Of a DNA stretch of 64,000 nt, positions 1 through 64,000 are shown one piece after another. The translations under genes and the position numbers were made by a program. Positions within the stretch are counted from its first letter, which is position 1. Every line of letters begins with the position of its first letter. The stretch is from assembly GCA_026770705.1 (NCBI GenBank), contig JANJGN010000071.1, forward strand, positions 1,240,001-1,304,000, written 5' to 3'. The notes under the pieces are model-generated. The model made no database searches and was not told the DNA's origin. It saw only the letters and a program-made list of their open reading frames with translations. Source of the DNA: Isurus oxyrinchus (lineage: Eukaryota).

Positions 1-7
1 GTCTCTC

Positions 8-765
8 TGTTATGACTCAGCAACTGGTAAAGGCTGTTGTTTAAAATCCCAGAGGGAAACTTTAAACAACTGTCATAACCTATATTTCCCAGTGGAATGT
101 TTGAGATGCAGCTCTAAATTAAGGAATAAGACCACCAGTTCTCGGGATGGTTTTATATCAAACTACATGAGACGTTTATTAATTTACACAAGTTAAACAT
201 ATGCACATGGCTACAAACTAGTATTATCATAACTTTTTAACAAATTCTTAAACTAATCTCCTCTAAGACAACCCATAGACTTTAAGCAGACACCAGGCAA
301 AGCATTTTCACCTCACAAATTCCAAATGAGGTTCCTTTCACTTTGGTTCCTTTGCAGACAGGTGCAGGCTTACAGCTGCTTTGATGTTACAAGCCTCTGC
401 TCTGCACACACAAAACTGCTCAAGTTATACCCAGCGCTTCGATTTGAATGTAAATTCTCATTGTATCATCAGGACCTTTGAACTACACCTCTTTTAACAA
501 TAAATCCCCTTTCATCGTCTCAATTTTATTAGTAATATAAACGTTGATGGGTTTAAGATTTCACCCCCAGACATTGAATGCTCTATTTAAAAATGCAAAT
601 TACCACTTTACCTCTTTGTTTACATCTCAAAACTATGATACATCAAAGTACACAGACTGGCTGGCTTTCATCCAATTAAAACACACACAAACACACCCAC
701 AGACTGAACTCCTGTCAAAATAGACAATTTCCAATTACATTACATACATTAATAGATTCATAACA
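8..765. mobile_element. Solo LTR-like element
   Basis: Bounded by inverted termini tgttatga (8-15) and tcataaca (758-765), i.e. TG...CA. Related copies lie at ~4268-5082, ~49026-49783 and ~53404-54221; two of these interrupt a LINE. Confidence 0.6.
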
Positions 766-904
766 CTCTGTCTCTGTCCCTTCATCTCTATCCCTCTCTC
801 TCATCCTCTCTCTGATTACAAGGTGCATGTTATTGAGCCTCACACCAGGCACCTGTGTGCAGAATCCAAGCCGTCACTCGCCAGAGCCATTACCGAGGGA
901 GTGC

Positions 905-1140
905 GAGACTGACAGAGGGTCAGTACTGAGGGAGTGCTGCACTGCCGGAGGGTCAGTACTGAGGGAGTACTGCACTGCCGGAGGGTCAGTACTGAGGTAG
1001 CACTGCACTGTCGGAGGGTCAGTACTGAGGGAGTGCTGCACTGTCAGAGGGTCAGTACTGAGGGAGTGCTGCACTGCCGGAGGGTCAGTACTGAGGGAGT
1101 ACTGCACTGCCGGAGGGTCAGTACTGAGAGAGTGCTGCAC
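905..1140. repeat. 33-bp minisatellite (cagtactgagggagtgctgcactgtcagagggt)
   Basis: Direct tandem copies; the source of the repetitive ORFs 874..1338 and 934..1149. Confidence 0.95.
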
Positions 1141-1288
1141 ATGCCTTAGGTGGTTTCTATCATAAGCCATGGGAAGGAGAGTTAAACCCACTGAGCCACG
1201 ACTGACACTAACGAGGCTGCACAATAATTTAACCCTATCAGTGCCAGGAAATGATGTGAGGATGCCTTCTGTTTCCATTTCTCTGTAG

Positions 1289-1529
1289 GGTAAACAGAAC
1301 GTGCTGATTACTGAGCCCCAGAACACAACCAGAGACACAACTAGTGAGGGGGAGACCCCAGCTCCCCGGGATCTCTGAAGGTCCAGTGGGAGGCGATGCT
1401 GGACATGGGAACCCTGACAATCCCGCCGACCTTCTCTACGCCAATCCCCAAGTCTTCAGGGTGCCCAGTGGTGATGGGTCTGTCCACCGGGAAGAGAAGA
1501 CGGAATACGCACAGATCAGATTCAAGTGA
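1289..1529 (+). pseudogene. Siglec-like terminal cytoplasmic exon (copy 1), frameshifted before the Tyr motifs
   Basis: Acceptor ctctgtag at 1287-88. The phase-0 frame GKQNVLITEPQNTT... hits TGA at 1376-78 because 2 nt are missing relative to the copies at 47405 and 50339. LLYANP and TEYAQI fall in another frame. Confidence 0.8.
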
Positions 1530-2589
1530 AATTGAGTGTGAAACGGGGAGAGGGGGTGAGGAGGTTTGTGGGTGTGGCCAGGGATTATGATTCCTTGGAA
1601 CATGAGGCAACCCACTGGGGGAGAGGGGGAGAGAGGGAGGAAGGGACTGAATGGGTCTGTGGTTGGTGAGGTTTGGAATGAAATGTTTCCCCAGTAATGA
1701 CTTGATGCTGAGTCATTGGGGACAGAGATTCAGTGTCTCTCTCTCTGTCCCTGTCTCTCTATCTCTTTCTGTGTCTCTCTCACTCTGCTTCTCTGTCTAT
1801 CGCTCTCTCTCTCTCCTCATTTAACATGGTCCTTATAAACTGGCTTTGTTAACTCAGCTTTTTGTCACCTGTCCCTAATATCTCATTATGTGTCTCAGAG
1901 AAGGATTTATATGTGGTTAGCAATCCCCTAAAGGGTTTTGGCACAGTTTGCTACATTAAAGGTGCTATGTTAATGCAAGTTGTTGTAGTATCTTGGACCT
2001 GCCTCGATTCAGAATGGAACCAATGAGGCTCCTTCGACAGGGCGTGTGTGCAACAGGCTCGCAATAAATGCATTGCAGAGCAACAACTAAGCATGTGCTT
2101 TGATGCTGATGCATCCCAGTCCTGCTGTGTGGACACATCACAACCGAGGGACTGCCTGACTGCGTGCAGCCAACATGGCCGAATAGTAATTAGCAGAAAT
2201 GTGACGTCACTGAACTTTGTTAACATTTCAGAATGTGCTTTCTGAATTCTGCAACTTGTTTATTCTGTGATAGATTACAAGAAGCTTTTGCATTTTCTAT
2301 AATATTACATTTATTGTCACAAGGGATTGAAATGCCCAGACACCACCACCTGGAAGTTCGCCTCCAAGCCACACATCATCCTGATTTTGAAATATATCGC
2401 CGTCCCTTCACTGCCACTTGGTCAAAATCTTGGAATTCCTCCTGTAACTGCATTGTGGGTGTACCTACACCACATGGACTGCAGAGGGTCCGGAAGGCAG
2501 CTCACCACCACCTTCTCAAGGTAATTAGGGATGGGCCATTAATGCTGGCCTAGCCAGTGATGCCCACTTCCCATGGAAGAATGAATATA

Positions 2590-5490
2590 TAAAATATAAA
2601 GTTGGAACAAATGAATGAAGTTATAGCACAAATAGAGATTAATGGGTACGATAAGATGGACACTGCAGAGAGTTGGTTGCAAGGTGACCAAGGTTGGAAA
2701 TTGAAAATTGAAGGATATTTGGAATCTTTGAAAGGATAGGAAAAATGAAAAGGAGGTGGGGTCGCTCTGTTAATAAAAGATGAGACCTGTAAAGTAGTGA
2801 GAAATGATCTTGGCTCAAATGTCAAGATGCACAGTCAGTTTGGGTGAATATAAGAAATTGCAAGGGAAAGAAATCTCTGATGGGTTGGTTTTACTCCACC
2901 CTGACAGTAGTTACACTGCAGGGGTAGATTATAAATCAATACATCAGGAGGTCTGTGAGAAAGGCACCACATTAATCATGGGATTTTTCAATCGTCATAT
3001 GGATTAGACAAATCAGATTAGCAAATGTAGCTTTCAGCGAGATTATACAGATTGTATTCAGGACAGTATTTTAGAACAATGCAACATGGAACCAACCAGG
3101 GAAGAGGCTGTTTTAGTCCTGGCAATGTTTAATGAGACAAGACTAATTAACATCTCATTGTAAAGGACCCTCAAGGGAAGAGTAATCATACGGTGTTGAA
3201 ATTTAATATTCAATTTGGAAACTTGGGTCTGAAGCTAGTGTCATAAACTTAACTAAAGGCAATTACAAGGGTTAAAAGTAGAGTCGGCCCAAGTGGAGTG
3301 GGACAGCAGGTTAAAGTGGGGGGGAGGGTGTAGATGAGGAGTAATAGGCATCTAAAGAGATCTTTCATAAATTCCAATGAAGATATTTTCCAGTAAGAAA
3401 GAAAGAATCTATAAAAAGGATGGAGCATCGGCGGCTAACTCAGGAAGCTAAGGACGGTATCCAATTGTGAGATAAAGCCGGCAATGTTGGGATGCTTAGT
3501 GATAGGCTGGAGATTGGGAATATTTGAGAAACCAGAAAAGTGAGGGGAGAAATATAAGGAGGCAGAAATGATGATATGAGAGTAAACTAGCAAGAACCAT
3601 AAACAATGACAGTGAGATGTTGTACATTAAAATAAGAGAGAAGCTACAGTAATAATGGGACACATAGAAAATCAGACTGGGGAATTAATAATGGGAAACA
3701 GGAAATGACAGAGACTTTCAACAAGAATTTTGTGTCTGTCTTCACAGTAAAAATCTCTAAAACCATCCCAATAGCAGGAGAAAGTCACGGTGCAACAAGG
3801 AGGGAGGAACATAAAACAATCACTATCACCAGAGAAAAAGTATTAAGAAAACTAATGAGACAGATGCTGACAAGTCCCATGGAGCAGACGGCCTGAATGT
3901 GAGGGTCTGAAAGGAAATGGCTGCAGAGAGGGTGGATGCATTGGTTGTAATCTTCCAGAATTCCTTAGATTATGGGAAGGTCCCAGCGGATTGGAAAAAC
4001 ATAAATGAAACATTTCTGTTCAATAAAGTGGGGAGGCAGAAAGCAAGAAACTACAGGTCAGTTAGTCTAATATCTGTCATTGGGAAAATACCAGAATTCA
4101 TTATGAAGGAGGGAGCAGCAGGACATTTAGAAAACCATAATTCAATCAGACAGAGTCAACATGGGTTTGTGAAAGGGATATCATGTTTGAAAAAATAATT
4201 AGATTTCCTCGAGGATGTAACAAGTGGATTGGATAAAGGGGAACCTGTAGATGTGGTGTATTAGGGACTATGACACAGCCAAGGGTAAAGGCTGAGTTGT
4301 TCAAATCCCAGAGGGAAAATTGAAACAACTGTCATAACCCAATTTTGCTGTTTGTAATTTCGAGATGAAGACTTTGAATTCAGTAGGAATAAGACGACCG
4401 AGGATTGAGGGTTTTTTATATAAAATTAAATAAACCATTTATTAATTTAACACATACACATTGGCTACAAGTAACTACTATAATAACTTTTTAACAAATC
4501 CCCCAATTAATCACCCCTACGTAAATCTCTACTAAGGCAACAATGAACCATTGACATAATATAGACACCAGGCAAAGCACATTTGACATTACGAATTCCG
4601 AATGAGGTTCCTTTGCTAGTTGGTTGGAGGCTACAGGCTGGTTCGGTCTGAAATGCTCCTGCCTCACACACACAAACTCCTTCCTTTATATAGCTAGCTT
4701 TCCCTTTGAATGTAAATTTTCCATTGTATCACTCGGTCTTCTGAACTCCACCTCTTCGAACAATAAAACCCCCTTTCATAGCACCAATTTCATTAGTAAG
4801 TTCAAGAAAAAACACATCTTTTGGCTCCTTCTAACTAGGTGCAAGATTTTACCCCCAGTCTGGAATGGTTTATTCAACAATTGCAAATGAACAATTTACT
4901 GTTCTCCTCACAATTCACCTAATTAACATCTCAAAACTACTAAACATCAAAGCACACAGACCAGTTGGCTTTAATCCAATTAAGACACACCCAGACACAC
5001 ACCTATACATGGACCACCACTAGAATTCTATTTTATTAATAATTTCCAAGGACATTTTACACACAAATATCTCTTCGTGACATTGGATTTCCAAAAGGCA
5101 TTCATTAAGGTGCCACATCAAAGGATACAGCACAGGGTGAAATTGGATGGTGTTGGGGGTGATATATTAATATGGATAGAGGACTGGCTAACTGACAGGA
5201 AACAGAGAGCCAGGATAAATGGGTGATTTTCAGCTTGGTAAACTGTAACTAGTGGAGAGCCACAGGGATCAGTGCTGAGGCCTCAACTATTCACAATCTA
5301 CATTAGTGACTTGGATGAAGGGACTGACTGTGCTGTAGGCAGATTTTCTGACTGTATGGTGAAGATAGGTAGGAAATATATAACCTGGGCAGGAAAGCTA
5401 GTTCTGAGGAGGACACAAAGAGGCTGTAGGGGGAGATAAATAGTTTCCGTGAGTGGATAAAATAATGAGCGGATGGAATATAAGGAGTGA
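2590..5490 (+). mobile_element. Degenerate CR1/L2-type LINE ORF2 (endonuclease/RT), interrupted by an LTR-like insert at ~4268-5082
   Basis: Peptide remnants VPADWK...NYRSVSLISVIGK...SQHGFVKG and PQGSVL.PQLFTIY; many stops. Confidence 0.85.
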
Positions 5491-5502
5491 AAATATCAGG
5501 GT

Positions 5503-5718
5503 TAAAACAAAAAAAACTGCAGATGCTGGAAATCCAAAACAAAAACAGAATTACCTGGAAAAACTCAGCAGGTCTGGCAGCATTGGCGGAGAAGAAAAGA
5601 GTTGACGTTTCGAGTCCTCATGACAAAAGGACTCAAGGATTCGAAAACGTCAACTCTTTTCTTCTCCGCCAATGCTGCCAGACCTGCTGAGTTTTTCCAG
5701 GTAATTCTGTTTTTGTTT
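5503..5718. mobile_element. Penelope-like inverted-repeat (hairpin) insertion with ~15-bp target-site duplication
   Basis: Arms are reverse complements. Flanked by tgaaaat(a/g)tcagggt at 5488-5502 and 5719-5733. Absent at the paralogous site ~54630. Confidence 0.8.
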
Positions 5719-5830
5719 TGAAAATGTCAGGGTGTCCAGCTGATCCTACTTGTTCTGTTCTTATATTCTTATACAGACACAGGGTTTACTGACAGTGCAC
5801 AGCAAAGTGCTGTTCACTCACTTTGTTCCG

Positions 5831-5880
5831 ACTTCCTCATTTTGACTCACAGTGACACATCAACCCTTTCTAATTAAATA
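5831..5880 (+). promoter_or_regulatory. Putative promoter of Siglec-like gene A: PU.1/ETS site, AP-1 site, AT-rich box
   Basis: ACTTCCTCATTTT (reverse of AAAATGAGGAAGT) at 5831, TGACTCA at 5843-49, taattaaata at 5871. Conserved upstream of all paralogous exon-1 copies. Confidence 0.55.
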
Positions 5881-5970
5881 CACAGAGGGAGCAGCACAGG
5901 AAGAGGTCATTCAGCCCAAGCAGAGCGTGTGGGCAGTTACTCCCCAGGCGAGCAGTCGGACAGGTCCTGG
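5881..5970 (+). other. Non-coding exon 1 of Siglec-like gene A (5' start approximate)
   Basis: Ends at a strong donor TGG|gtaagt; four near-identical copies in the window; no ATG. Confidence 0.6.
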
Positions 5971-6403
5971 GTAAGTAACGGAACGATTGGAATTCACTTC
6001 CACCACCAACACCGTCCTTTGTTGATGTTGTGACTTTATAAAGACAGATTCCAATGATTGATGCCTTTGAAAGATTTCTACTGGTTATTGAGATCTGGGT
6101 GTGAGGCTCAAGTCTGTTGTACAGAACATCTTTCTAGCTCATGGAACATGAGCTTTGGGACACCCTGAGGTGGTGAAAGGTGCTATAGAAATGCAAGACC
6201 TTCATTGTATTTCTTTCTGAATGCCTTGTAACTCTCTGCAGAGCACCTATCATCCCACAAAGAATCAAATTAGTCTGTGAAGATATTGTCTAAAAGCAGT
6301 TCTGATCTCTCGAGAGCTGTCGGACAAGAGGTGAAGTCTCATTAACTCCTTTCTCTTTCAGAACTTCAGAGTTAGAAGCTGAGGAAATATCTGGGAGTGG
6401 ACA

Positions 6404-6443
6404 ATGATCGGGAAATCTTACTTCCTCCTGTCACTTCTCCAAG
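6404..6443 (+). CDS. Gene A signal-peptide exon MIGKSYFLLSLLQ
   Basis: ATG in an acaATG context; 40 nt ending CAAG|gtaata; joins in phase 1 to VGLSQEW. Confidence 0.8.
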
Positions 6444-7316
6444 GTAATATCATCATCAGCTCGGACAGACTTACGGTTAATAGTCTTTGTAAAAGATCAT
6501 TTTTATTGACCTCTAATTGGGAACTGATTTAGCAGTGACCCAGTGTACAAACTCACACCAAGTCCCATTCATCCATCACCCCTGTGCTCACTGATATACA
6601 CTGACTCCCTGTCTGACAGCAGAATTGGAGGAGAGCAGAGGCCTTGGAGGGTTGTAGGGGCTGGAGGAGTGTACAGGGATAGGCAGGTTTGTAGCAGCGA
6701 GAGCAGAATCTTAAAATTCAGGTGTTGTCAGACGTTGGTCAGTGAGCGATGGGGATTGATGGGTTGAGTAGAGAAGCAGGGATAAAACCTGGTGGGTGAA
6801 GCCTATCCTAATGAGAGTTATCCGATAGCAATAACCTGAAATTTGTGTCCTTTGCTGCCTTTATTCAAAATTTCCCATGAAGACAACACAGCAGCTCCTA
6901 GAATAGACAGGCTGTTCAGTGTCACACTTCCTGTCCATTCTCACCTTGCTAGATACTTCAATAAGGGAGCAAGATAACTGAAAGAGAGAAGAAAGGCAAA
7001 ACTGTCTGTGTGTAAAACTGTCAAATATTCTGAGTTATCATGAGTGTCTCTGATCTGCTGCAGAGTTTAAATTTCACAGAATCTGAGCACTTTGCAGCTC
7101 AGAGAGAGACCATTGACTCACTGCCTGAAAGGCCGGTGGAAGCAGATTCAACAGGAACTTTCAGAAGGGGAACTGGATAAATACTTGAAGGGAAATTTGC
7201 AGGGATGTGCGAAAGGTGCTGGAGAGGAATTGGGAAAGAGTCAGCACATGCACGATGGGTCAAACAAGCTCCTCCTGTGTTGTATCATTCAACGATCAGA
7301 CAATTTAAGAACCTTG

Positions 7317-8513
7317 TCAGCAAATCTTCAGAATCCTGCTGAATCACAGATGTTTCAGAAGGACAGGGAACACGAGGTTTCTGGTATCAACACTTCATGT
7401 GGGGCCCAGTTCAGTTGGAACAAAAAAAATGACAATAGCGTCTTTGAAAGTCATGAAACCACCACAGCGGCACCTCCGACATATGCAGAGCTCAGGCTAG
7501 AGGCACTTTGTTAGTGTGTTTCACAGGGTCTGCTGGAGTAGGGTCAGTGCTGAGCTTGGGGACAAGTCAGTCTACAATGCTGCATCGGAATCAACAATAC
7601 AACAATATGGGGTTTGGATCAGAAATAATCCCCTAGACAATGAGGATCCAAAGAGATTCCTTAGACAATGAGGATCCAAAGAGATTCCTTATTCCATCGG
7701 TTGTCTAACTGGGGTCCATGATTTTCCAAGGGGTCCTTGGCAGAATCAAATTATCGAGCAATAGTGTGTAAAATACCGGAGAGAACGGGAAAGGTGGGAT
7801 CAATGGAAAACTGTTCACTCTGTTTACACTAATGGGAGTTAGTCTCAGTAATGGAGACCATGAAACTATCATCGATTGTCATACACACCCATCTGGTTCA
7901 CTAATGGCCTTTAGGGAAGGAAATCTGCCGTCTATATCTGGTCTGGCCTACATGTGACTCCAGACTCATAGCAACGTGGTTCCTCTGAAATGTCCGAGCA
8001 AACCATCCAGTTCTCACCATGCTAGAAACTTCAATAAGGGAGTAAGATAACTGAAAGACAGAAGGAAGGTAAAGCTGCTCATGTGGATAGATGTCAAATA
8101 TCCTGAGTGATCATGATTGTCTCTACTCTGCTACAGAGATTATGTCACGGGACATTAGAGATGGGCAGCAAATGCTGGCCTTGGCAGCGACGCCCACATC
8201 CCATGAATGAATACATTTACAAAATCTTATTATTTGGAAGGTGCAAGTCCAGGTTGTTATGATCCTTGAGCAGACCCTCTCAGCACTGACCCTACTCCAG
8301 CAGACCCTGAGAAACACACTAACAAAGCGCCTCTAGCCTGAGCTCTGCATGTGTCGGAGGTGCCGCTGTGGTGGGTTCATGACTTTCAAAGATGGTGTTG
8401 TTTATTTGTTCAAACTGAACTGGGCCCCACACAAAACGCTGATACCAGAAACCTCTTGTTCCCTGTCCTTCTGAAATATCCGTGACTTCAGCAGGATTCT
8501 GAAGAGTTGCTGA
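7317..8513. repeat. ~240-bp inverted repeat pair (7317-7554 / 8279-8513) in the gene A leader-V intron
   Basis: Arms are reverse complements; both translate to ...ESHE.TTAAPPT(Y/H)AELRLEALC. Repeated at ~56245-57466. Confidence 0.85.
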
Positions 8514-9875
8514 TGGAGGAACAGACACCCAATTTTTTTTCGTAATTTACAGTTTGGAACCAATAATATTTTGTTTCAAGTAGACGAGGTTTGAGATTTA
8601 AGATGCTTGCGAAGAGAATAAAGCTACAAGATTCCATGGCTTTTAAACAAACAAAAATAAACTTTACTGCACCAGCTCAGATAGATAAAATAATTCACAA
8701 TATCCACCTTATACCCTAACATTCTGGATTAATATGAGCTCATGTGAATTAACAGGCAAACTGTGGTCTCACAGCCACATTACTCATTAAATTGTAAACG
8801 CGACCAAGATAGAGCCCATGGATTTCACAACAACCCACCCGGACATCAGTGAACACTGTCAGTCAACCAATCTCACTGAAACTCTGTTTCTCTCATGAGG
8901 GATTCCAGTCCTCAACTTCGAAGATCTTGCCTTGGAATTCTCTCCAAAAGTCACTTCAACTCGGATGGCCTCAGTGACGTTCCACCTCACAGGGTTTCCA
9001 TCTCTTCTCCTGAGGCTCCATTGCCCTGGATTCCCGACTATATACTCAAGCACCTCTAGGATTAGATGAAAGGTTTTGATTGACTGGGTAGAGAGAGAAT
9101 GTTCCCTCTTGTGGGCAGGAGAATAACTAGAGGCCGAGTGATTGGTGATTCCTTAAACATTGAAGAGGGAATGAACACCAATCAGATTGAATCAGATTAG
9201 CCAATCAGCTGTGTTGAAGAGCAGATAGGAATGTTAGGCTAATTAGTGATTCATGACGGTGATACTGGGGGGAGATCTGAGGGCTCCTAATCCATTGTCC
9301 TGTCTTGTAAATCAGCACTGAATGGATCTCAGTTGGTGGGTCTTGTTGACACTGTGTTGGGTGGAAGATTGGCTTCACTAAGGGGAAGCGGTAGCGGAGA
9401 GGTATTTTCACAGGGCTAGTATTCCAGAGGCCCAGGGTGATGCTCTGGGGCCCTGGGTGTGAATCCCATCACAGCAGATGAATGGGATTAAAAAGCCTGG
9501 TTCACTGATCACCTATAGGGTAGGAAATCTGCCAGCCTTACCCAGTCTGGCCTACATGTCACTCCAAACCCACAGCAATGTGGTTGACTCTTAAATACCT
9601 CTGATGGACATGGGATGGGCAATAAGTCCCATGAATGAATAATTTGAAAAAATTCTAAACAGAGTCCTGAGGACCATGAGCCAATGTAGAATGAACTTGT
9701 CCACTCCTGCATCCAGGATTCTCTTCCATCCATTGTGAAACCTTGAGGAGTTCCTTGTGTGTCCTGTAGATGGTCCACACTGTAGCCAATGTGCCCCAGT
9801 GATGGAGGGGGTGGATATCAAGTCTAGTGGATCGAAAAAACATCCAGAATTAAGTATTGATATTTCTCTCCACAG

Positions 9876-10241
9876 TTGGACTGTCACAAGAGTGGAAAGG
9901 TGACACTCCACGAGAGGTGACAGCGCAGGAAGGTTTCTGTGTACAGATTCCATGTCATTACAGTTATCCATCACATTTGGAAAAGCAACCACGAGTTGGA
10001 ATCTGGTTTAATAATGAGGAATGGAGAAAATCGTCTAGAGCCTTTCACTCCAAAGATCACAGTCACGAGTTACCACGGTTCCACCATCGGACCCGGCTGT
10101 CTGGAGACCTGAAAGATGGTGACTGTTCCCTGATTATAAACAACATCAGACGGGAAGATGCAGGACCTTATTTTTTCAGAATAGAATTTGACAGCAGAAA
10201 TAAATACAGCTACTATCCTGTAACCCAGCTTCACGTTTCTG
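9876..10241 (+). CDS. Gene A Siglec V-set domain exon
   Basis: Shows Siglec hallmarks CVQIPC, GDCSL, YFFR (essential Arg position) and KYSY; 366 nt, phase 1-1. Confidence 0.92.
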
Positions 10242-10716
10242 GTAAGTGCTGTGTTATAATTACTCAACAATTCACATTCAACACTCAATGGGAAATAACA
10301 CAAACTGTGACGTTTACATATTAACACAAAACACAGCTTATTATAACACACTGTCTGATTCTCAATAACCTGCTGATAGCTTCCAGTTCAGTCCGAAAGC
10401 AACCTCTAATACTCACTTTAGTATCACTGATGAAAAGCATTAACTGTATTCTCAGGTTATCCACTCCCATCAATCTCTCCTGTCCTGTTTAAAAGTCTGA
10501 CTTATCGATAAAAGAAAGATGTGCATTTCTGCAGCGCAATTTACCACCTCAGGAGGATCCAAATCCCTTCACAGCCAACAAAATTATTCCTGAATTGTAG
10601 TCACAGATGTTAAACACAGCAGGCAGTTTGTGCACAGCAAGATCCAACAAACCACAAGGTGCTAAATCACCCAGATCACTGAGGAAATGAGAAGCCAGTG
10701 AACTCAAACCTCTGGT

Positions 10717-10750
10717 CTGATGAAGAGTCATACGGACTCGAAACGTTAAC
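10717..10750 (+). ncRNA. Minimal hammerhead ribozyme motif in a Penelope-like terminal repeat fragment
   Basis: CTGATGA-a-GAGTC-atacg-GACTC-GAAA-CGTTA: catalytic core boxes, a perfect 5-bp helix II and a palindromic helix III. Copies at ~23416 and ~59672. Confidence 0.65.
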
Positions 10751-11100
10751 CCTGTCTTCCTCTCCACTGATACTGTCAGACCTGCTGAGTCTTTCCAGCA
10801 ATTTTTGTTTTTGTTTCAGATTTCCAGCATCCGCAGTATTCTGCTTTTAACTCCAATCTCTGGTCTGAGCCTCTTCTCTCATCCAGTGTTGTCAATTCAC
10901 ATGTCTCGGAGTGAACGTGTATTAAGCTGAGAGACAGAAACACTACTGCCAAAGAGCAAGAAAATCTTTCCTGATCATTGTAACCTCTCAGTTCTGATAT
11001 CATCCTTGTAAAAGTACTTTCTCTTGTGGGACTGTGATTTCTATTTGAACTGATGCTTCACGTTATATTTCTCTAAAAGGATCCATTCTCTGTGTGTTAG

Positions 11101-11398
11101 ATTTCACAGATAAACCCACGATATTCCCTGCTGAAATTATCGCAGGAAAGCGCTGTGGATGTAAGCTGCACCTTCAACACAACGTGCAATGGAACAGCAG
11201 CACCTGTCTTAACCTGGGACACTCCCACTGACGTACCTGGATCAGTCTCAAACACTGTAACTCAGCATGGTGTCACTCTGACCCATACTTCTGTTCTGAC
11301 CCTGATCCCATCACTCAAACACCACGGACACACACTCAGCTGCAGAGTGAGATATCCATCTGTTTCATTGGAGCGGACCCTCATACTAACTGTGCAAG
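11101..11398 (+). pseudogene. Gene A second Ig (C2-set) exon with a +1 frameshift
   Basis: 298 nt versus 297 in the paralogues; aagcgCtgtggat versus aagcgtgtggat; leads to TGA at 11229-31. Confidence 0.85.
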
Positions 11399-11617
11399 GT
11401 AAGAACGGTCAACCTTCATTCTACATTAGCTAGAAAGCTGTACATAGTACATTGCAAGATCCCACAACTGCATTGTGTTTAGCAACAAATCAATAGTCTT
11501 TAACTGATACAAATTCACCTCTGACACTGCAGCAATCCCTGAATACTGATTCTCCAACACTGCAGCACTCCCTCAGTACTGAGTCTTGTTCACAATGAAA
11601 TCTTTAATTGTTCTTAG

Positions 11618-11710
11618 ATGCACCACAGAATCTCTCATTTACTTCGCGTGATATGATTAATGTTTCATCGATCAATATAATTGAGGGGTTCATAACCATC
11701 ACTGTGGAAT
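11618..11710 (+). CDS. Gene A 93-nt internally deleted Ig mini-exon
   Basis: Reads DAPQNLSFTSRDMINVSSINIIEG/FITITVE; both splice sites intact; in frame. Confidence 0.7.
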
Positions 11711-11824
11711 GTGAGTTAATGCAAACTTCAACATCACTCACACACACACACACACACATGCAGAAACATACACAATCTCAACTCACACAAGCACACACAC
11801 ACACATGCATAGACAGACACACGT

Positions 11825-53900: not shown

Positions 53901-54738
53901 ATAAAACCCCCTTTCATAGCACCAATTTCATTAATAAGTTCAAGAAAAAACACATCTTTTGGATCCTTCTAACTAGGTGCAAGATTTTACCCCCTGTCTG
54001 GAATGGTTTATTCAACAATTGCAAATGAACACTTTACTGTTCTCCTCACAATTCACCCAATTAACATCTCAAAACTACTAAACATCAAAACACACAGACC
54101 AGCTGGCTTTAATCCAATTAAGACACACACAGACACACACCTATACATGGACCACCACTAGAATTCTATTTTAAAATATAATTTCCAAGCACATTTTACA
54201 CACAAGTATCTCTTCATGACATTGCATTTCCGAAAGGCATTCGATAAGGTGCCACATCAAAGGATACTGCACAGGGTGAAATTGGATGGTGTTGGGGGTG
54301 ATATATTAATATGGATAGAGGACTGGCTAACTGACAGGAAACAGAGAGCCAGGATAAATGGGTGATTTTCAGCTTGGTAAACTGTAACTTGTGGATAGCC
54401 ACAGGGATCAGTGCTGAGGCCTCAACTATTCACAATCTACATTAGTGACTTGGATGAAGGGACTGACAGTACTGTAGGAAGATTTTCTGACTGTGTGGTT
54501 AAGATAGGTAGGAAATATATAAACTGAGCAGGAAAGCAAGTTGTGAGGAGGACACAAAGAGGCTGTAGAGCGAGATAAATAGTTTCAGTGAGTGGATAAA
54601 AAAAAGAGTGGATGGAATATAAGGAATGAAAATGCCAGGGTGTCCAGCTGATCCTACTTGTTCTGTTCTTATATTCTTATACAGACACAGGGTTTACTGA
54701 CAGTGCACAGCAAAGTGCTCTTCTCTCAGTTTGCTCCA

Positions 54739-54878
54739 ACTTCCTCATTTTGACTCACAGTGACACATCAGCTCTTTCTAATTAAATACACAGATAGATC
54801 AGCACAGGAAGAGGTCATTCAGCCCAAACAGAACGTGTGGGCAGTTCCTCCCCAGGTGAGCAGTCGGACAGGTCCTGG
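54739..54878 (+). promoter_or_regulatory. Gene C promoter (ETS and AP-1) and non-coding exon 1
   Basis: ACTTCCTC at 54739, TGACTCA at 54751, donor gtaagt at 54879. Confidence 0.6.
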
Positions 54879-55328
54879 GTAAGTAACGGAACGATTGGAA
54901 TTCACTTCCACAATCAACACCGTCCTTTGTTGATGTTGTGACTTTATAAAGACAGATTCCAATGATTGATGCCTTTGAAAGATTTCTACTGCTTATTGAG
55001 ATCTGGGTGTGGGGCTCAAGTCTGTTGTACAGAACATCTTTCTAGCTCAAGGGATGAGACAAGTGCAGAGACATGAGATTTGGGATGTCCTGAGCAGGTG
55101 AAAGGTGCTATAGAAATGCAAGTCCTTCATTGTTTTTCTTTCTTAAAGCCTAGTAACTCTCTGCAGAGCACCTATCATCCCGCAGAGTATCAAATTAGTC
55201 TGTGATGACATTGTCTAAAAGAAGTTCAGATCTCTCGACAGCTGTCAGACAAGAGGTGAGGTCTCATTAACTCCTTTCTCTTTCACAGCTTGAGAGTGAG
55301 AAGCTAATGGAACATCTGCGAGTGGACA

Positions 55329-58300
55329 ATGATCGGGAAATCTTACTTTCTCCTGTCATTTCTCCAAGGTAATATCATCGTCAGCTCGGACAGATTTATG
55401 GTTAATTGTCTTTGTAAAAGATCATTTTTATTGCGCTCTGATTGGGCAGTGATTCTGCAGTGAGACAGTGTACAAACTCACACCAAGTCCCATTCACCCA
55501 TCACCCCTGTGCTCACTGATATACACTGACTCCCTGTCTGACAGCAGAATTGGAGGATAGCAGAAGTCCTGGATGGTTGTAGGGGCTGGAGGAGGTTAGA
55601 GGGTTAGGCAGGATTGTAGCAGCTAGATCAGAATCTTAATCTTCAGGTGATGTCGGATGCTGGTCAGTGAGTCATGGGGAGTGATGAGTTGAGCAGTAAA
55701 TTAGGAATAAACACTGGGAGATGAAGTCTATCCCGATGCTTGGACTCTGAAAGCAATAACCTGAAATGTGTGCCTTTTGCAGATTTTAGACAGAATTTCC
55801 CATGAAGACAACACAGCAGCTCCTAGAATAGACAGGCTGTTCAGTGTCACACTTCCTGTCCATTCTCACCTTGCTAGATACTTCAATAAGGGAGCAAGAT
55901 AACTGAAAGAGAGAAGGAAGGCAAAGCTGTCTGTGTGTAAAACTGTCAAATATTCTGAGTTATCATGAGTGTCTCTGATCTGCTGCAGAGTTTAAATTTC
56001 ACAGAATCTGAGCACTTTGCAGCTCAGAGAGAGACCATTGACTCACTGCCTGAAAGGGCGGTGGAAGCAGATTCAACAGGAACTTTCAGAAGGGGAACTG
56101 GATAAATACTTGAAGGGTAAATTTGCAGGGATGTGTGAAAGGTGCTGGAGAGGAATTGGGAAAGAGTCAGCACATGCACGATGGATCAAACAAGCTCCTC
56201 CTGTGTTATATCATTCAACAATCAGACAATTTAAGAACCTTGTCAGCAAATCTTCAGAATCCTGCTGAATCACAGATATTTCAGAAGGACAGGGAAGAAG
56301 AGGTTTCTGGTATCAGCATTTCATGTGGGGCCCAGTTCAGTTTGAACAAAAAAAATGACAACAGCATCTTTGAAAGTCATGAACCCACCACAGCGGCACC
56401 TCCGACACATGCAGAGCTCAGGCTAGAGGCGCTTTGTTAGTGTGTTTCACAGTGTCTGCTGGAGTAGGGTCAGTGCTGAGCTTGGGGACAAGTCAGTCTA
56501 CAATGCTGCATCGGAATCAACAATACAACAATATGGGGTTTGGATCAGAAATAATCCATTAGACAATGAGGATCCAAAGAGATTCCTTAGACAATGAGGA
56601 TCCAAAGAGATTCCTTAGACAATGAGAATCCAAAGAGATTCCTTATTCCATTGGTTGTCTAACTGGGGTCCATGATTTTCCAAGGGGTCCTTGGCAGAAT
56701 CTAATTATTGAGCAATAGTGTGTAAAATACCGGAGAGAAAGGGAAAGGTGGGATCAATGGAAAACTGTTCACTCTGTTTACACTAATGGGAGTTAGTCTC
56801 AGTAATGGAGACCATGAAACTATCATCGATTGTCATACACACCCATCTGGTTCACTAATGGCCTTTAGGGAAGGAAATCTGCCGTCTATATCTGGTCTGG
56901 CCTACATGTGACTCCAGACTCATAGCAACGTGGTTCCTCTGAAATGTCCGAGCAAACCATCCAGTTCTCACCATGCTAGAAACTTCAATAAGGGAGTAAG
57001 ATAACTGAAAGACAGAAGGAAGCCTAAGCTGTTCATGTGGATAGATGTCAAATATCCTGAGTGATCATGATTGTCTCTACTCTGCTACAGAGATTATGTC
57101 ACGGGACATTAGAGATGGGCAGCAAATGCTGGCCTTGGCAGCGACGCCCACATCCCATGAATGAATACATTTACAAAATCTTATTACTTGGAAGGTGCAA
57201 GTGCAGGTTGTTATGATCCTTGAGCAGACCCTCTCAGCACTGACCCTACTCCAGCAGACACTGTGAAACACACTAACAAAGCGCCTCTCGCCTGAGCTCT
57301 GCATGTGTCGGAGGTGCCGCTGCGGTGGGTTCATGACTTTCAAAGATGGTGTTGTTTATTTGTTCAAACTGAACTGGGCCCCACACAAAACGCTGATACC
57401 AGAAACCTCTTGTTCCCTGTCCTTCTGAAATATCCGTGACTTCAGCAGGATTCTGAAGAGTTGCTGATGGAGGAACAGGCACCCAATTTTTTTTGATAAT
57501 TTACAGTTAGGAACCAATAATATTTTGTTTCAAGTAGACGAGGTTTGAGATTTAAGACGCCTGCAAAGAGAATAAAGCTACAAGATTCCATGGCTTTTAA
57601 ACAAAAAAAAAAATAAACTTTACTGCACCAGCTCAGAAAGATAAAATAATTCACAATATCCACCTTATACCCTAACATTCTGGATTAATATGAGCTCATG
57701 TGAATTAACAGGCAAACTGTGGTCTCACAGCCACATTACTCATTAAATTGTAAACGCAACCAAGATAGAGCCCATGGATTTCACAACAACCCACCCGGAC
57801 ATCAGTGAACACTGTCAGTCAACCAATCTCACTGAAACTCTGTTTCTCTCATGAGGGATTCCAGTCTTCAACTTCGAAGATCTTGCCTTGGAATTCTCTC
57901 CAAAAGTCGCTTCAACTCGGATGGCCTCAGTGACGTTCCACCTCACAGGGTTTCCATCTCTTCTCCTGAGGCTCCATTGCCCTGGATTCTTGACTATATA
58001 CTCAAGCACCACTAGGATTAGATGAAAGGTTTTGATTGACTGGGTAGACAGAGAATGTTCCCTCTTGTAGGCAGGAGAATAACTAGAGGCCGAGTGATTG
58101 GTGATTCCTTAAACATTGAAGAGGGAATGAACACCAATCAGATTGAATCAGATTAGCCAATCAGCTGTGTTGAAGAGCAGACAGGAATGTTAGGCTAATT
58201 AGTGATTCATGACGGTGATAATGGGGGGAGTTCTGAGGGCTCCTAATCCATTGTCCTGTCTTGTAAATCAGCACTGAATGGATCTCAGTTGGTGTGTCTT

Positions 58301-61300
58301 GTAGACACTGTGTTGGGTGGAAGACTGGTTTCACTAAGGGGAAGCGGTAGCAGAGAGGTATTGTCACTGGGCTAGTATTCCAGAGGCCCAGGGTGATGCA
58401 CTGGGGCCCTGGGTGTAAATCCCATCACAGCAGATGAATGGGATTAAAAAGCCTGGTTCACTGATCACCTATAGGGAAGGAGGTCTGACACTCTTACCCA
58501 GTCTGGCCTACATGTCACTCCAAACCCTCAGCAATGTGGTTGACTCTTAAATGCCTCTGATGGAGATGGGATGGGTAATAAATCCCATGAATGAATAATT
58601 TGAAAAAAAGCTAAACAGGGTCCTGAGGACCATGAGCCAATATAGAATGAACTTGTCCACTCCTGTGTCCAGGATTCTCTTCCATCCATTGTGAAACCTT
58701 GGGGATTTCCTTGTGTGTCCTGTAGATGGTCCACACTGCAGCCACTGTGCCCCAGTGATGGAGGGGGTGGATATCGAGTCTATTGGATCTACAAACCATC
58801 CAGAGTTAAATATTGATATTTCTCTCCCCAGTTGGAATGTCACAAGAGTGGAAAGGTGACACTCCACGAGAGGTGACAGCGCAGGAAAGTTCGTGTGCAC
58901 AGATTCCATGTCATTACAGTTATCCATCACATTTGGAAAACCAACCACGAGTTGGAATCTGGTTTAATAATGAGGAATGGAGAACATCGTCTATAGCCTT
59001 TCACTCCAAGGATCACAGTCACGAGTTACCACGGTTCCACCATCGGACCCGGCTGTCTGGATACCTGAAAGATGGCGACTGTTCCCTGATTATAAACAAC
59101 ATCAGACGGGAAGATGCAGGACCTTATTTTTTCAGAATAGAATTTGACAATGGTCCGAGCCATAACTATTACCCTGTAACCCAGCTTCACGTGTCTGGTA
59201 AGTGCTGTGTTATAATTACTCAACAATTCACATTCAACACTCAATGGGAAATAACACAAACTGTGACGTTTACATATTAACACAAAACACAGCTTATTAT
59301 AACACACTGTCTGATTCTCAATAACCTGGTGATAGCTTCCAGTTCAGTCCTAAAGCAACCTCTAATACTCACTTTAATATCAATGATGAAAAGCATTAAC
59401 TGTATTATCAGGTTACCACTCCCATCAATCTCTCCTGTCCTGTTTAAAAGTCTGACGTATCGATAAAAGAAAGATGTGCATTTCTGCAGCGCAATTTACC
59501 ACCTCAGGAGGATCCAAATCCCTTCACAGCCAACGAAATTATTCCTGAATTGTAGTCACAGATGTTAAACACAGCAGGCAGTTTGTGCACAGCAAGATTC
59601 AACAAACCACAATGTAATAAATCACCCAGATCACTGAGGAAATGAGAAGCCAGTGAACTCAAACCTCTGGTCTGATGAAGAGTCATACGGACTCGAAACG
59701 TTAACTCTGTCTTCCTCTCCACTGATACTGTCAGACCTGCTGAGTCTTTCCAGCAATTTTTGTTTTGGTTTCAGATTTCCAGCATCCGCAGTATTCTGCT
59801 TTTAACTCCAATCTCTGGTCTGAGCCTCTTCTCTCATCCAGTATTCTCAATTCACATGTCTCGGAGTGAACGTGTATTAAGCTGAGAGACAGAAACACTA
59901 CTGCCAAAGAGCAAGAAAATCTTTCCTGATCATTGTAACCTCTCAGTTCTGATATCATCCTTGTAAAAGTGCTTTCTCTTGTGGGACTGTGATTTCTATT
60001 TGAACTGATGCTTCACGTTATATTTCTCTAAAAGGATCCATTCTCTGTCTGTTAGATTTCACAGATAAACCCACGATATTCCCTGCTGAAATTATTGCAG
60101 GAAAGCGTGTGGATGTAAGCTGCACCTTCAACACAACGTGCAATGGAACAGCAGCACCTGTCTTAACCTGGGACACTCCCACTGACGTACCTGGATCAGT
60201 CTCAAACACTGTAACTCATCATGGTGTCACTCTGACCTATACTTCTGTTCTGACCCTGATCCCATCACTCAAACACCACGGACACACTCTCAGCTGCAGA
60301 GTGAGATATCCATCTGTTTCGTCGGAGCGGACCCTCGTACTAACTGTGCAAGGTAAGAACGGACACCCTTCCATCTACATTAGCTAGAAAGCTCTACATA
60401 GTATATTGCAAGATCCCACAACTGCATTGTGTTTAGCAACAAATCAATAGTCTTTAACTGATACAAATTCACCTTTGACACTGCAGCAGTCCCTGAACAC
60501 TGACTCTCCAACACTGCAGCACTCCCTCAGTACTGATCCTCTGACAGTGCAGCACTCCCTCAGTACTGAGTCTTGTTCACAATGAAATCTTTAATTGTTC
60601 TTAGATGCACCACAGAATCTCTCATTTACTTCGCTTGATATGATTAATGCTTCATCGATCAATATAATTGAGGGGCTCATAACCATCACTGTGGAATGTN
60701 NNNNNNNNNNNNNNNNNNNNNNNNNNNNNNNNNNNNNNNNNNNNNNNNNNNNNNNNNNNNNNNNNNNNNNNNNNNNNNNNNNNNNNNNNNNNNNNNNNNN
60801 NNNNNNNNNNNNNNNNNNNNNNNNNNNNNNNNNNNNNNNNNNNNNNNNNNNNNNNNNNNNNNNNNNNNNNNNNNNNNNNACACAGATCCTTATTTTACAG
60901 AAACATACACACACAAGCCAACACACACATACACACACAAAAACATGTGGGTTCCCTCTCCTCTCTCAGGGCTGCACTGGAGTCTCAGTATCAGCTCCGA
61001 ATCTTTGTTGATGAAAGGTAAACTCCCGATCATCAAGACACTGAACTGGCTGGAGCAACCTCCTGAACAGTGAATTGTAGATTTACCCCTCAGTGCGCCA
61101 TTGGTCAAATACAATTCATTGCCTTTGAAGCCCTTGGGGACATCCTGAGGATCTGAAAGGGAGTTTCCTGCATTCTAGATGGACACCTCCACTGGTGGGA
61201 GAATGTAACTGCAGTGTGACAGTTTACATAGGAAGTGCCCATTATAAATGTGACAGTAATTTTTCCTGAGGGAAGGTACCTGGAAAAGCATTCCAACATC

Positions 61301-64000
61301 AGATACAGAGAGATGATGCATGGAGTCTTGCTGTGCACTATGCTTGCTCACATTAAAATCTTTATTTATTTTTAGATGCTCCACAGAATCTCTCAATTAC
61401 TTCTCCAGATATGATTAACGCTTCATCGATCAATATAATTGAGGGGAATTCTGCAGTGATAATCTGCTCTGTCGAGAGCTTCCCAGCTTCTAACCTGACG
61501 TGGCGACATCTTAATGTCCCAATGAACAGAACAAGTTCCAACAATGAGCTGTGGTTGGTGATTCCTCACGTTACATCCAGGGACACTGGAGACTATCAGT
61601 GTGTGGCAGAGAATGAACATGGAGCAGTGGAGGGGTTCATAACCATCACTGTGGAATGTGAGTTANNNNNNNNNNNNNNNNNNNNNNNNNNNNNNNNNNN
61701 NNNNNNNNNNNNNNNNNNNNNNNNNNNNNNNNNNNNNNNNNNNNNNNNNNNNNNNNNNNNNNNNNNNNNNNNNNNNNNNNNNNNNNNNNNNNNNNNNNNN
61801 NNNNNNNNNNNNNNNNNNNNNNNNNNNNNNNNNNNNNTAAGTATACACAGACAGTCATACATGTACAAACACATACACAGGAAAATACACACCCATCTCA
61901 AACACACACACATATTCATGCCCACACATAGACACACACATACACGTACTCTCACTCATGTACAGACGTAGACACACAGACACGCGTGCATGCGCACACA
62001 CAGCTACATGTGTGCATACACACACAAACACACTCACATGTGCAGTAACACAAACACACACATACACACGCGAGAGTTCTCAGTGCTGCACTGGAGTCTC
62101 GGTATCAGCTCCGATTCTGTGTTGAAGGAAGGTAAACTCCGGATCAACAAGACCCTGAATTGGATGGAGCAACCTCCTGAACAGAGAATTGTAGATTTAC
62201 CCCTCAGTGCTCCCTCAATCAAACATTGCCTGTCAAGCCCTTTGCGAAATCCTGAGGATGTGAAAGCAAACTTCTTTCATTCTAGATGGGCAACACCTCT
62301 ACTGGTGGGAGAATGCAACTGCAGTGTGACAGTTTACATAAGCAGTGTCAATTATAAATGTGCCATAAGACCTTATCCTGAGGGAAGTTATCTGCAAATG
62401 CATTCGGACATCAGATACAGAGAGATGATGCATGGCGTCTTGTGCACTATGTTGCTCACTTTAAAATCTTTCCATATATTTAGATGCACCATTGAATCTC
62501 TCAATTAATTCTCTTGATATGATTAACGCTTCATCGATCAATATAATTGAGGGGAATTCTGCAGTGATAATCTGCTCTGTCGAGAGCTTCCCAGCTTCTA
62601 ACCTGACGTGGTGACATCTTAATGTCCAAATGAACAGAACAAGTTCCAACAATGAGCTGTGGTTGGTGATTCCTCACGTTACATCCAGGGACACTGGAGA
62701 CTATCAGTGTGTGGCAGAGAATGAACATGGAGCAGTAGAGGGGTTCATAACCATCACTGTGGAACGTGAGTTAACACAAGCTTCAACATTACTCTCACAT
62801 ATACACAGACACACTCATACACACTCATACACACGTGCACACAAACAAGCATTCATGTGCAATCCCACATGTGCACAGGTGTGCACGCCTGTATGCTCAC
62901 ACACAGAAGCATACATACAGAATCACACGTGTGCTTGCTCACACACACACAGACATGTGTGAGTTGTCTGTTCTCCCTGTGCTGCACTGGAGTGTTGCTC
63001 CAGATTCTGCTCTGAAACACTGACGACATCAGCTGAACAAGACCCTGTATTGGACGAGCAGCCCCCTGCACAGAGAATTGTAGGTTTATCACTCAATACC
63101 CCATTATTCTAAAGCAATTCCTCCACTGTCAAATCCCTGTGAACATCCTGATGATGTGAAAGACATTTTCTTTTCTTCTAGACCGACAGTGTCTCCTCTG
63201 GTAGATGGCTGTAATTACAGCGTGACAGTTTACATATCCACATGCAGCAAGAGCTGAATAACACTCAGCTTGGGCTGAGACAATTAATGCATCACAATTA
63301 CCAGGCAGTGATCATGTCCAACAAGAGAGAATCTAACCATCTCCCCTTGATGTTCAGTGAGTTTACTATCACTGAATCCCCCACAATCAACATCCTGGGG
63401 GATGTTAACCAAACTACTAACTGGACCGGCCATAAATACTGTGGCTACAGGAGCAGGTCAGAGGCTGGGAATTCTGTGGGTGTGAAAAACTCACCACCAC
63501 CTCCTCAAGGGCAATTAGGGATGGGTAATAAATGCTGGTCTAGATAGATACATCCACTTCCCATGAATGTGCAAAAAGAAAAACACCGGCAGTGACCATT
63601 ATAAAAGTTGACATAGGAACTTAAAACAGGAAAGAACTCTTGAAATGCACATAGACACCAAATAGAGAGAGATGTATCATGGAGTCTTGCTGTGCACTGT
63701 GTTTGCTGACAATGAAACCTTTATTTGTATTTAGATGCACCACGGAACCCATCAATTACTTCTCTTGATATGATTAACGCTTCATCGATCAATATAATTG
63801 AGGGAAATGCTGCAGTGATAATCTGCTCTGTCGAAAGCTTCCCAGCTTCTAACCTGACGTGGTGACATCTTAATGTCCCAATGAACAGAACAAGTTCCAA
63901 CAATGAGCTGTGGTTGGTGATTCCTCACGTTACATCCAGGGACACTGGAGACTATCAGTGTGCGGCAGAGAATGAACATGGAGCAGTGGAGGGATTTATA
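55329..64000 (+). CDS. Siglec-like gene C (incomplete at the window end): leader, V, C2, mini-exon and Ig1 intact; Ig2 and Ig3 carry nonsense codons
   Basis: Exons 55329-55368 (MIGKSYFLLSFLQ), 58832-59197, 60056-60352, 60605-60697, 61376-61657, 62484-62765 (TGA at 62612) and 63735->end (TGA at 63863). Confidence 0.8.
58832..59197 (+). CDS. Gene C Siglec V-set exon
   Basis: CAQIPC, GDCSL, YFFR; 366 nt. Confidence 0.92.
60056..60352 (+). CDS. Gene C C2-set exon, intact
   Basis: 297 nt, open frame. Confidence 0.9.
61376..61657 (+). CDS. Gene C Ig repeat exon 1, intact
   Basis: 282 nt, open frame. Confidence 0.9.

Follow-up and report, generated by a model that had tools for sequence, protein, structure and literature searches.

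The window analysed here, a stretch of 64,000 nucleotides from the genome of Isurus oxyrinchus (GenBank assembly GCA_026770705.1, contig JANJGN010000071.1, positions 1,240,001 to 1,304,000, forward strand), carries a cluster of genes for Siglec-like receptors around a hepcidin gene. We favour, at a probability of roughly 70%, the reading that these genes belong to a Siglec-type multigene family, restricted to elasmobranchs among the proteins compared, that lies near hepcidin and evolves through gene conversion, the loss of exons and duplication in tandem. As a cluster it is real; among its members, gene B is a genuine, transcribed Siglec-like gene of the activating type, its signalling being predicted from its sequence. 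The window was mapped by a six-frame reading, Pfam, tblastn with database relatives, RNA contigs and self-comparison, and holds three Siglec-like genes on the plus strand (A, B and C), a broken V exon on the minus strand (D), three loose tail exons and the hepcidin gene (Table 1). An earlier reading of the same DNA, referred to below as the original prediction, had proposed a system of paired activating and inhibitory receptors kept alike by gene conversion.

Each of the three genes has a Siglec-type V-set exon. Those of A and B pass the Pfam cut-offs for V-set (2e-12 to 4e-13) and Ig_CD22, and when the gene A exon was compared with all PDB sequences by phmmer the 18 best matches were Siglecs, with scores of 1e-15 for Siglec-5, 7e-15 for MAG, 3e-14 for CD33 and 7e-13 for sialoadhesin, Siglec-8 also being among the leading matches and Siglec-15 (3e-8) and CD22 (1e-5) scoring more weakly. 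The motif YFFRIE of A, B and C aligns with YFFRVE of Siglec-5 and YYFRGD of MAG, at the position of the sialic-acid-binding arginine, and among 85 related V domains, 72 have an arginine in this key column. The cysteine pattern of Siglecs is likewise present at the sequence level in alignment with Siglec-5, as EG(F/S)CVQIPC...GDCSLII in V and VSCTFNTTC in C2, the latter supplying the additional cysteine expected for the bond between the two domains. An AlphaFold (AF2) model of the gene B V domain reached a predicted local distance difference test score (pLDDT) of 86, and the top 40 PDB entries retrieved with it by Foldseek were almost all Siglec V domains (TM-scores of 0.77–0.85), led by those of sialoadhesin, MAG, CD33, Siglec-10, -7, -8 and -5. 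As judged from sequence and modelled fold, the V domains of A, B and C are of Siglec type, and they are predicted to bind sialic acid. The originally proposed architecture, a Siglec-like V-set with the essential arginine followed by C2 and immunoglobulin (Ig) repeats, is borne out by Pfam, by the PDB matches and by the 282-nt Ig-repeat exons.

Gene B and its transcripts

Gene B is open in frame in every exon, has only phase 1 introns and codes for a product of about 290 residues. Its last exon reads DSGGE-ILHVILILGIRAVIFLVAVVITIAGVCVW-ERQTVKGSRQTV and then a stop; as in activating members, there is a basic residue in the transmembrane segment and a short tail without signalling motifs.

The RNA evidence consists of contigs from four public runs of three studies, which were examined on gene B. 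The leader is joined to the V exon (21861>22562) in three runs, the V to the C2 exon (22937>23799) in four, in one case by a 258-nt contig that extends 157 nt to one side of the joint and 101 nt to the other, and the C2 exon to the exon of the arginine-bearing transmembrane segment (24094>26248) in four runs from all three studies, every joint having GT..AG ends. The exact exon boundaries are 21863/22564, 22938/23800 and 24096/26250. Gene B, or a near-identical copy of it, is transcribed and spliced as predicted. The short-tailed arginine exon had been placed at 26250, which is exactly where it starts, spliced to C2 in RNA, and the presence of B-type spliced transcripts in four runs speaks against the possibility, raised together with the original prediction, that gene B is not expressed. 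The last intron also holds the 3' half of an Ig-repeat exon, which is skipped in RNA by the joint 24094>26248; gene B therefore descends from a longer receptor.

Compared with A, C and the great white shark proteins, the leader of gene B lacks 1 nt; the usual ATG (21825) thereby falls out of frame, and an upstream ATG at 21803 (MEYLGVDNDREIYFLLSLLQ) is the in-frame start. At position 21838, RNA contigs of three runs have an extra T that restores the MIGKSYFLL frame, and one run is mostly without it, like the window. Either B varies between alleles here or some of the transcripts come from paralogues.

Signalling ends and exchange among the genes

The V and C2 exons of the three genes lie within a block over which they are unusually alike. 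In alignment, the homology of B with A and C begins abruptly at 22343 and stops at 24127; inside it, V and C2 are separated by an intron of 858 nt that is 97.4–98.0% identical in all three pairs (divergence 2.0–2.6%) and C2 is 97% identical, as against 92–93% (divergence 6.8–8.0%) in the leader block, compared over 5802–6506, 21203–21926 and 54710–55431 (Fisher p of 6e-5 to 2e-8 versus this second intron). Likeness is lowest in the V exon, B sharing 83–86% of nucleotides and 74–78% of amino acids with A or C, with a synonymous divergence (dS) of 0.25–0.33, about tenfold the divergence of the intron, and a ratio of nonsynonymous to synonymous divergence (dN/dS) of about 0.55. From these two values it follows that the V divergence resides in old or imported sequence patches, and recent positive selection as its cause is ruled out by them. 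The differences lie in two patches. One (approximately nt 100–225), spanning the C-C' region, sets B apart from the other two genes, and the other (approximately nt 325–350), spanning strand G, does the same for A, which makes C a mosaic. Read from the alignments, this pattern is what gene conversion leaves when ligand-facing V patches are retained or swapped. The gene conversion of the original prediction is thus supported by the closeness of the V-C2 intron relative to the leader block and by the patchiness of the V differences, while its description of the ectodomains as near-identical has to be given up for the V domain of B, though it suits C2.

Gene A has its uncharged transmembrane exon, a cytoplasmic exon (cytA) and its last exon in the same order as great white shark XP_041037180. 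The last exon reads KKDEKDLEMKSNRGVNPDTDDDLYANCDFAKDSVYGNL and then a stop, combining a YxN motif with the consensus of an immunoreceptor tyrosine-based inhibitory motif (ITIM), and is homologous to the tails of P0012, P0007, P0045 and P0046. A tail of YxN/YxN/ITIM type had been expected; YEN is indeed found at 17244 and YAN with SVYGNL at 18078, but cytA had been overlooked and the 17244 exon is a candidate exon only. A segment resembling the latter was found only in P0007, and the great white shark model goes from the transmembrane exon through cytA directly to the 18078-type exon. An uncharged transmembrane exon ending in phase 2, which was to be looked for in neighbouring windows, lies instead inside this one, and together with the arginine exon of B it is the only transmembrane exon in the window. 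A 24-bp tandem repeat (17478–17979, about 21 copies, 94–96% identity) takes up the intron that separates the 17244 exon from that at 18078.

The cytA exon sits in an element of about 310 bp with copies 93–96% identical, and A, B and C each have such a copy upstream of their leader exon as well. The one before gene B is spliced to the B leader in RNA contigs (joint 21374>21786), and therefore either a coding exon is reused as an upstream exon or the transcripts are read-through or chimeric.

Gene C runs past the end of the window, and its tail lies there. Three assembly gaps are present in the window, all outside exons, and no reading frame spans any of them; the second and third fall in CA-rich introns of gene C, within a tandem array of roughly 1-kb Ig-exon units, and the number of its Ig exons is uncertain for that reason. 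A CA/TG-rich microsatellite follows every Ig-repeat exon, and two of the three gaps fall in this sequence.

The three loose tail exons are preceded by an identical acceptor and are homologous to the tails of annotated shark proteins (P0023, P0002) in which such tails follow V, C2 and an uncharged transmembrane segment. Their proximal motif LYANP fits YxN and not ITIM, some relatives having LLYASI in its place, and the distal TEYAQI fits the immunoreceptor tyrosine-based switch motif (ITSM). Of the YxN+ITSM tails originally placed at 1289, 47405 and 50339, the exons and motifs are there, but none has an ectodomain attached in the window and the one at 1289 is frameshifted. No sequence similarity was detected between the shark tails and those of mammalian CD33 and Siglec-12.

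Relatives among elasmobranchs and competing explanations

A search with the gene B V exon against 1.84 billion representative proteins gave 922 matches, the close ones all from sharks and rays; the highest identities were to great white shark proteins, up to 97%, and up to 97% for C2 as well. The arginine-bearing transmembrane exon with its 12-residue tail is conserved across shark orders (80–96% identical to exons of five other species of shark), its relatives being P0165, P0166 and P0169 of Carcharodon carcharias (91–96%), P0168 and P0170 of Scyliorhinus canicula, P0006, P0054 and P0153 of S. torazame and P0018 of Chiloscyllium punctatum; the stingray protein P0184 of Hypanus sabinus has a different arginine-bearing transmembrane segment. 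A search with this region alone, by a method relying on shared words, returned two proteins only, the fuller set coming from the other searches; the spliced models were searched one exon at a time. The build of gene B (V, C2, arginine-bearing transmembrane segment) recurs in P0054 and P0168–P0170, and also in XP_072325011, and the other two tail types recur across elasmobranchs too. Because all three signalling modules recur in sharks and rays, the system is old and elasmobranch-wide.

Two further features of these relatives may be recorded. In P0054 and P0018, which have the arginine-bearing transmembrane segment, the key arginine of the V domain is replaced by serine and lysine, respectively, and some primate Siglecs likewise lack it. 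P0014 of Pristis pectinata (415 residues) carries in its own tail a full sequence resembling an ITAM (immunoreceptor tyrosine-based activation motif), YQEL-x7-YSEL, which would be a fourth signalling option of the family.

A V-domain tree (85 rows, 122 columns, quick search, unrooted) places A, B and C in a clade confined to elasmobranchs, with 99% support in the Shimodaira–Hasegawa-like approximate likelihood ratio test (SH-aLRT). Outside this clade stand the shark 'CD22-like' proteins P0039 and P0041, P0099 (a 'Schwann cell myelin protein-like' protein of a shark), sialoadhesin of a frog, Siglecs of turtles, and CD33 and Siglec-12 of Tupaia. In the phylogenetic check suggested with the original prediction, the V domains are thus set apart from CD22-like proteins and Tupaia CD33 and do not group with mammalian CD33-related Siglecs. 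In a larger V tree the grouping follows lineage and not tail type: Scyliorhinus proteins with the arginine-bearing segment and with ITIM tails stand together (97% SH-aLRT), as do lamnid proteins with the arginine-bearing segment and with ITSM tails (94%), and nine changes of tail type are needed.

We envisage the following mechanism. Gene B would give a receptor with a signal peptide, a V domain of sialic-acid-binding type, a C2 domain, a transmembrane segment with a buried arginine and a tail of 12 residues, and the arginine would most likely pair with an adaptor that carries an ITAM, for example FcR-gamma or DAP12, leading to cell activation. Genes A and C would give receptors with V, C2, a spacer, at least three Ig domains, an uncharged transmembrane segment and a tail with YxN and SVYGNL, which may recruit SH2 phosphatases or Grb2 and so dampen or modulate the cell. 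The V plus C2 block of about 1.8 kb would have been exchanged recently among the three genes, its ligand-facing V patches staying divergent. Opposite signalling, adaptor coupling and any functional pair of genes are in this respect predictions drawn from sequence.

A number of observations weigh against this picture. The replacement signal peptide of B has an acidic N-region, the canonical start being out of frame. The joint of C2 to the transmembrane exon has only 21–30 nt on its shorter side in short contigs, and a near-identical paralogue could be the source of these contigs. In gene A, the C2 exon has an extra C near 11153, outside any homopolymer, that shifts the frame, and tblastn matches break at 11150/11155; gene A is accordingly a pseudogene, one allele or the product of an assembly error. 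This frameshift occurs, in spite of an uncharged transmembrane segment and a terminal SVYGNL, in the only complete ITIM-tailed gene of the window. The V domain of B differs from those of A and C at 22–26% of residues, mostly in the C-C' region, which tunes specificity in mammalian Siglecs, and since the differences are concentrated there the ligands of B may differ from those of A and C. Upstream of the loose tails, no transmembrane or ectodomain exon was found on the plus strand in the window. Finally, the well-supported branches of the tree are compatible with a single origin of the arginine-bearing transmembrane exon, so that the tree is supporting evidence and not proof. Functional pairing is thus weakened by the divergent V domain of B, by the frameshift in A and by the tails without ectodomains. 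Of the paired system as originally proposed, the adjacency of the arginine-bearing gene B to ITIM-tailed members stands; the ITSM tails, by contrast, are unlinked to any ectodomain in the window, and the one complete ITIM gene is frameshifted.

Much of this could also be accommodated if the cluster consisted mostly of decaying duplicates, with B a truncated by-product (poorly translated, or a decoy), A a pseudogene, the tails debris and the shared block a recent partial duplication, an explanation that we regard as improbable. It would account for the frameshift in the C2 exon of A and the out-of-frame canonical start of B, for the frameshifted tail at 1289, the tails without ectodomains, V exon D in its broken state and what is left of an Ig exon in B. 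However, the arginine exon of B with its 12-residue tail is conserved across shark orders, spliced B-type transcripts occur in four runs, B is open throughout all its exons, and the dS of the V exon is far above the intron divergence, unlike that of a simple recent duplication. Birth-and-death evolution, as put forward in the original prediction, is in keeping with the broken copies, namely D, the 1289 tail, the frameshifted A and the Ig remnant of B.

The preferred reading, a fast-evolving elasmobranch family near hepcidin, may be extended to the rather speculative proposal that the hepcidin-linked cluster is one surviving version of the ancestral Siglec locus of jawed vertebrates, already fast-evolving, activating and inhibitory, with swappable signalling exons, from which both the block of MAG, CD22 and HAMP and the CD33-related cluster descend. 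If this doubtful proposal were true, paired Siglec signalling would be about 450 million years old and not an invention of the mammalian CD33-related Siglecs.

The cluster does surround a hepcidin gene, as claimed for it originally: exon 3 scores above the Pfam cut-off, lies within the cluster and reads ...QRQKR MGRQQLCRFCCNCCNWREPNETCGLCCRY and then a stop. The mature hepcidin (34309–34395, minus strand) is unusual in the length of the loop between its cysteine pairs, carries the sequon NWREPNETC for N-glycosylation and lacks a histidine close to the N-terminus. Human HAMP adjoins MAG and CD22 on 19q13.1, and the genes might then be shark orthologues of these two, locally duplicated, and not a separate fast-evolving lineage. 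The hepcidin gene inside the cluster, the Pfam Ig_CD22 match of the V exons, the rank of MAG among the best PDB matches and YxN motifs that recall the CD22 tail are all in keeping with such an origin; it is nonetheless quite unlikely, given the elasmobranch-only clade (99% SH-aLRT) apart from shark CD22-like and Schwann cell myelin protein-like proteins, the score of human CD22 (1e-5) as compared with Siglec-5 (1e-15) and the existence of separate CD22-like genes in sharks. The open frame of gene D stops at the position of the key arginine, and D stands on a long branch with the cyprinid 'si:dkey-238d18.5' proteins as its nearest relatives (39% identity); orthology of this V exon to MAG could not be shown from the tree or the database relatives.

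By self-comparison, 1–14700 and 49019–64000 are two copies of one segment (92–95% identical), and 22343–24127 is a third, shorter copy of the part that carries two exons. That the two large copies are an assembly artefact, from uncollapsed haplotypes or a mis-join, is very improbable in spite of the three gaps in the second copy and the wealth of tandem repeats and satellites in the region, because they differ by 5–8% with many indels and different V patches, far over typical heterozygosity, gene B is a third and structurally distinct copy, and other shark genomes have many such genes.

The middle of the window is occupied by an inverted repeat of about 2.4 kb (97–98% identical) and by several satellites. 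Between the arms of the inverted repeat, which could favour inversion of the enclosed segment, lie the 5' part of the hepcidin gene, the broken V exon D and sequence resembling retroelements; the retroelement calls, near D and at 30–31 kb, are weak and under the Pfam cut-offs. A satellite with a period of about 33 bp, which in one frame reads ...STDPPTVQHSL..., occurs in arrays spread over the cluster and lies directly upstream of each ITIM-like/ITSM tail exon.

Table 1. Positions of the genes, exons, gaps and repeats in the 64,000-nt window
Feature	Position	Strand	Remarks
Gene A	6404-18194	+	Siglec-like
Gene A leader exon	6404-6443	+	MIGKSYFLLSLLQ; phase 1 donor; 100% identical to residues 2-20 of great white shark P0023
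Gene A V-set exon	9876-10241	+	366 nt; AG/GT boundaries; Pfam V-set 2e-12, Ig_CD22 3.8e-11; Siglec-5 1e-15
Gene A C2 exon	11101-11398	+	298 nt (297 in B and C)
Gene A mini-exon	11618-11710	+	93 nt, in frame; Ig-repeat exon minus core, splice sites retained
Gene A Ig-repeat exons (three)	12380-12661, 13325-13606, 14349-14630	+	282 nt each; Pfam Ig_3, I-set; CA-rich intron after each
Gene A uncharged transmembrane exon	15895-15991	+	NEWKAGLLGAGICLSLGLSGFFIFKCVRK; phase 1 to 2; 93% identical to transmembrane segment of great white shark XP_041037180 (P0012)
Gene A cytA exon	16648-16732	+	GSSTGRGHSAQAERVGSSSPGEQSDRYW; matches post-transmembrane segment of P0012 and P0007
Possible extra cytoplasmic exon with YEN	17244-17348 (end approximate, donor site uncertain)	+	Partial duplicate of 18078 exon
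Gene A last exon	18078-18194	+	...DLYANCDFAKDSVYGNL, stop; YxN (YAN) and ITIM-consensus SVYGNL
cytA-like copies	21282-21374 (before B leader), 5878-5970, 54801-54878	+	Sequence match
Gene B	21785-26389	+	Siglec-like
Gene B leader exon	21785-21863	+	RNA joint to V exon in three runs
Gene B V-set exon	22564-22938	+	375 nt; key Arg; Pfam V-set 3.8e-13; RNA joint to C2
Gene B C2 exon	23800-24096	+	Pfam C2-set_2; RNA joints
Gene B Ig remnant	24421-24571	+	3' half of Ig-repeat exon in last intron; tblastn, donor motif
Gene B last exon	26250-26389	+	Arg-bearing transmembrane segment ILHVILILGIRAVIFLVAVVITIAGVCVW; 12-residue tail without tyrosine; stop
Gene C	55329 to beyond 64000	+	Siglec-like
Gene C leader exon	55329-55368	+	MIGKSYFLLSFLQ
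Gene C V-set exon	58832-59197	+	Mosaic: A-like first variable patch, B-like second
Gene C C2 exon	60056-60352	+	297 nt
Gene C mini-exon	60605-60697	+	93 nt, as in A
Gene C Ig-repeat exons	61376-61657, ~62484-62765, 63735 to window end	+	Two gaps in its introns
Tail exon copy 1	1289-1532	+	Frameshifted near 1372; 3' end of a gene situated ahead of the window
Tail exon copy 2	47405-47653	+	Intact; LLYANP...TEYAQI
Tail exon copy 3	50339-50587	+	Intact; FLYANP...TEYAQI; 82% identical to great white shark P0023 tail, phmmer 1e-47
Juxtamembrane cytoplasmic exon	48811-48914	+	Goes with 50339 tail
Hepcidin exon 3	34309-34479	-	Furin-type site; 8-Cys mature peptide; Pfam PF06446 4e-7, 30.7 bits (cut-off 27)
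Gene D	41428-41727	-	Lone divergent Siglec-like V exon, adjoining retroelement-like sequence
Assembly gap 1	50787-50966		200 nt downstream of stop of 50339 tail exon
Assembly gap 2	60700-60879		Starts 2 nt past donor GT of gene C 93-nt mini-exon
Assembly gap 3	61666-61837		Starts 8 nt into intron following a gene C Ig exon
Inverted repeat	34882-37274 and 46947-44717		
Satellite, ~33-bp period	874-1260, 27812-28364, 34885-35136, 37266-37510, 43703-43978, 46709-47266, 49694-50255		
CA/TG-rich microsatellite	11711-11880, 12662-12800, 13607-13920, 60698-60900, 61658-61990		

Comparison with known receptor systems

Genes of this family already figure in the automatic annotations of other sharks, and the present work is therefore a characterisation and not the discovery of a new kind of gene. 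The annotated shark proteins have the family and its three signalling modules in common with the window (arginine-bearing transmembrane exon 80–96% identical, C2 up to 97%); they differ in being computed models with names borrowed from the best mammalian matches, and what the window contributes beyond them is the arrangement in the genome, the signature of conversion and the RNA joints. Our literature search found no study of shark Siglec clusters or of their pairing, nor of DAP12 in cartilaginous fish. A 2020 study concluded that fish have only four Siglecs (Siglec-1, CD22, MAG and Siglec-15), none of them an inhibitory CD33-related one, cartilaginous fish being outside its scope (PMC7226832). 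The conserved fish Siglecs resemble the shark family in V fold and key arginine, and Siglec-15 too has a charged transmembrane residue, but the shark family is a distinct clade. The Siglec family of elasmobranchs is large and has expanded separately; its signalling ends are of three interchangeable kinds, and its activating-type and ITIM-tailed genes lie adjacent and exchange V-C2 sequence.

With the mammalian CD33-related Siglecs this family shares a short V-C2 architecture and rapid, clustered birth-and-death evolution, and TEYAQI is like the mammalian TEYSEI/V. It differs from them in that the shark V domains stand apart from Tupaia CD33 and Siglec-12, the proximal LYANP is outside the ITIM consensus and the tails are without detectable similarity.

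Pathogens that imitate the sialic acids of their hosts are a proposed source of the pressure under which paired Siglecs arise. The shark cluster provides a defined locus for the study of FcR-gamma or DAP12 coupling in cartilaginous fish, and its linkage to HAMP offers a way of tracing the evolution of the Siglec locus. The known Siglec pairs are Siglec-5/14 and Siglec-11/16 (PMC4042635, PMC5701461). As in these human pairs, an inhibitory-type member and a short-tailed member with an arginine-bearing transmembrane segment are adjacent in the window, the key arginine of the V domain is present, and homogenisation spans V and C2 and ends before the transmembrane exon. Unlike in the human pairs, the shark V domains are 74–78% identical and not above 99%, the tail of the partner has YxN and one ITIM in place of an ITIM and an ITIM-like motif, there are at least three extra Ig domains, and the genes belong to a separate elasmobranch clade. 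Should both types oppose each other on related ligands, the shark cluster would be the oldest known case of paired Siglecs, or an independent second one.

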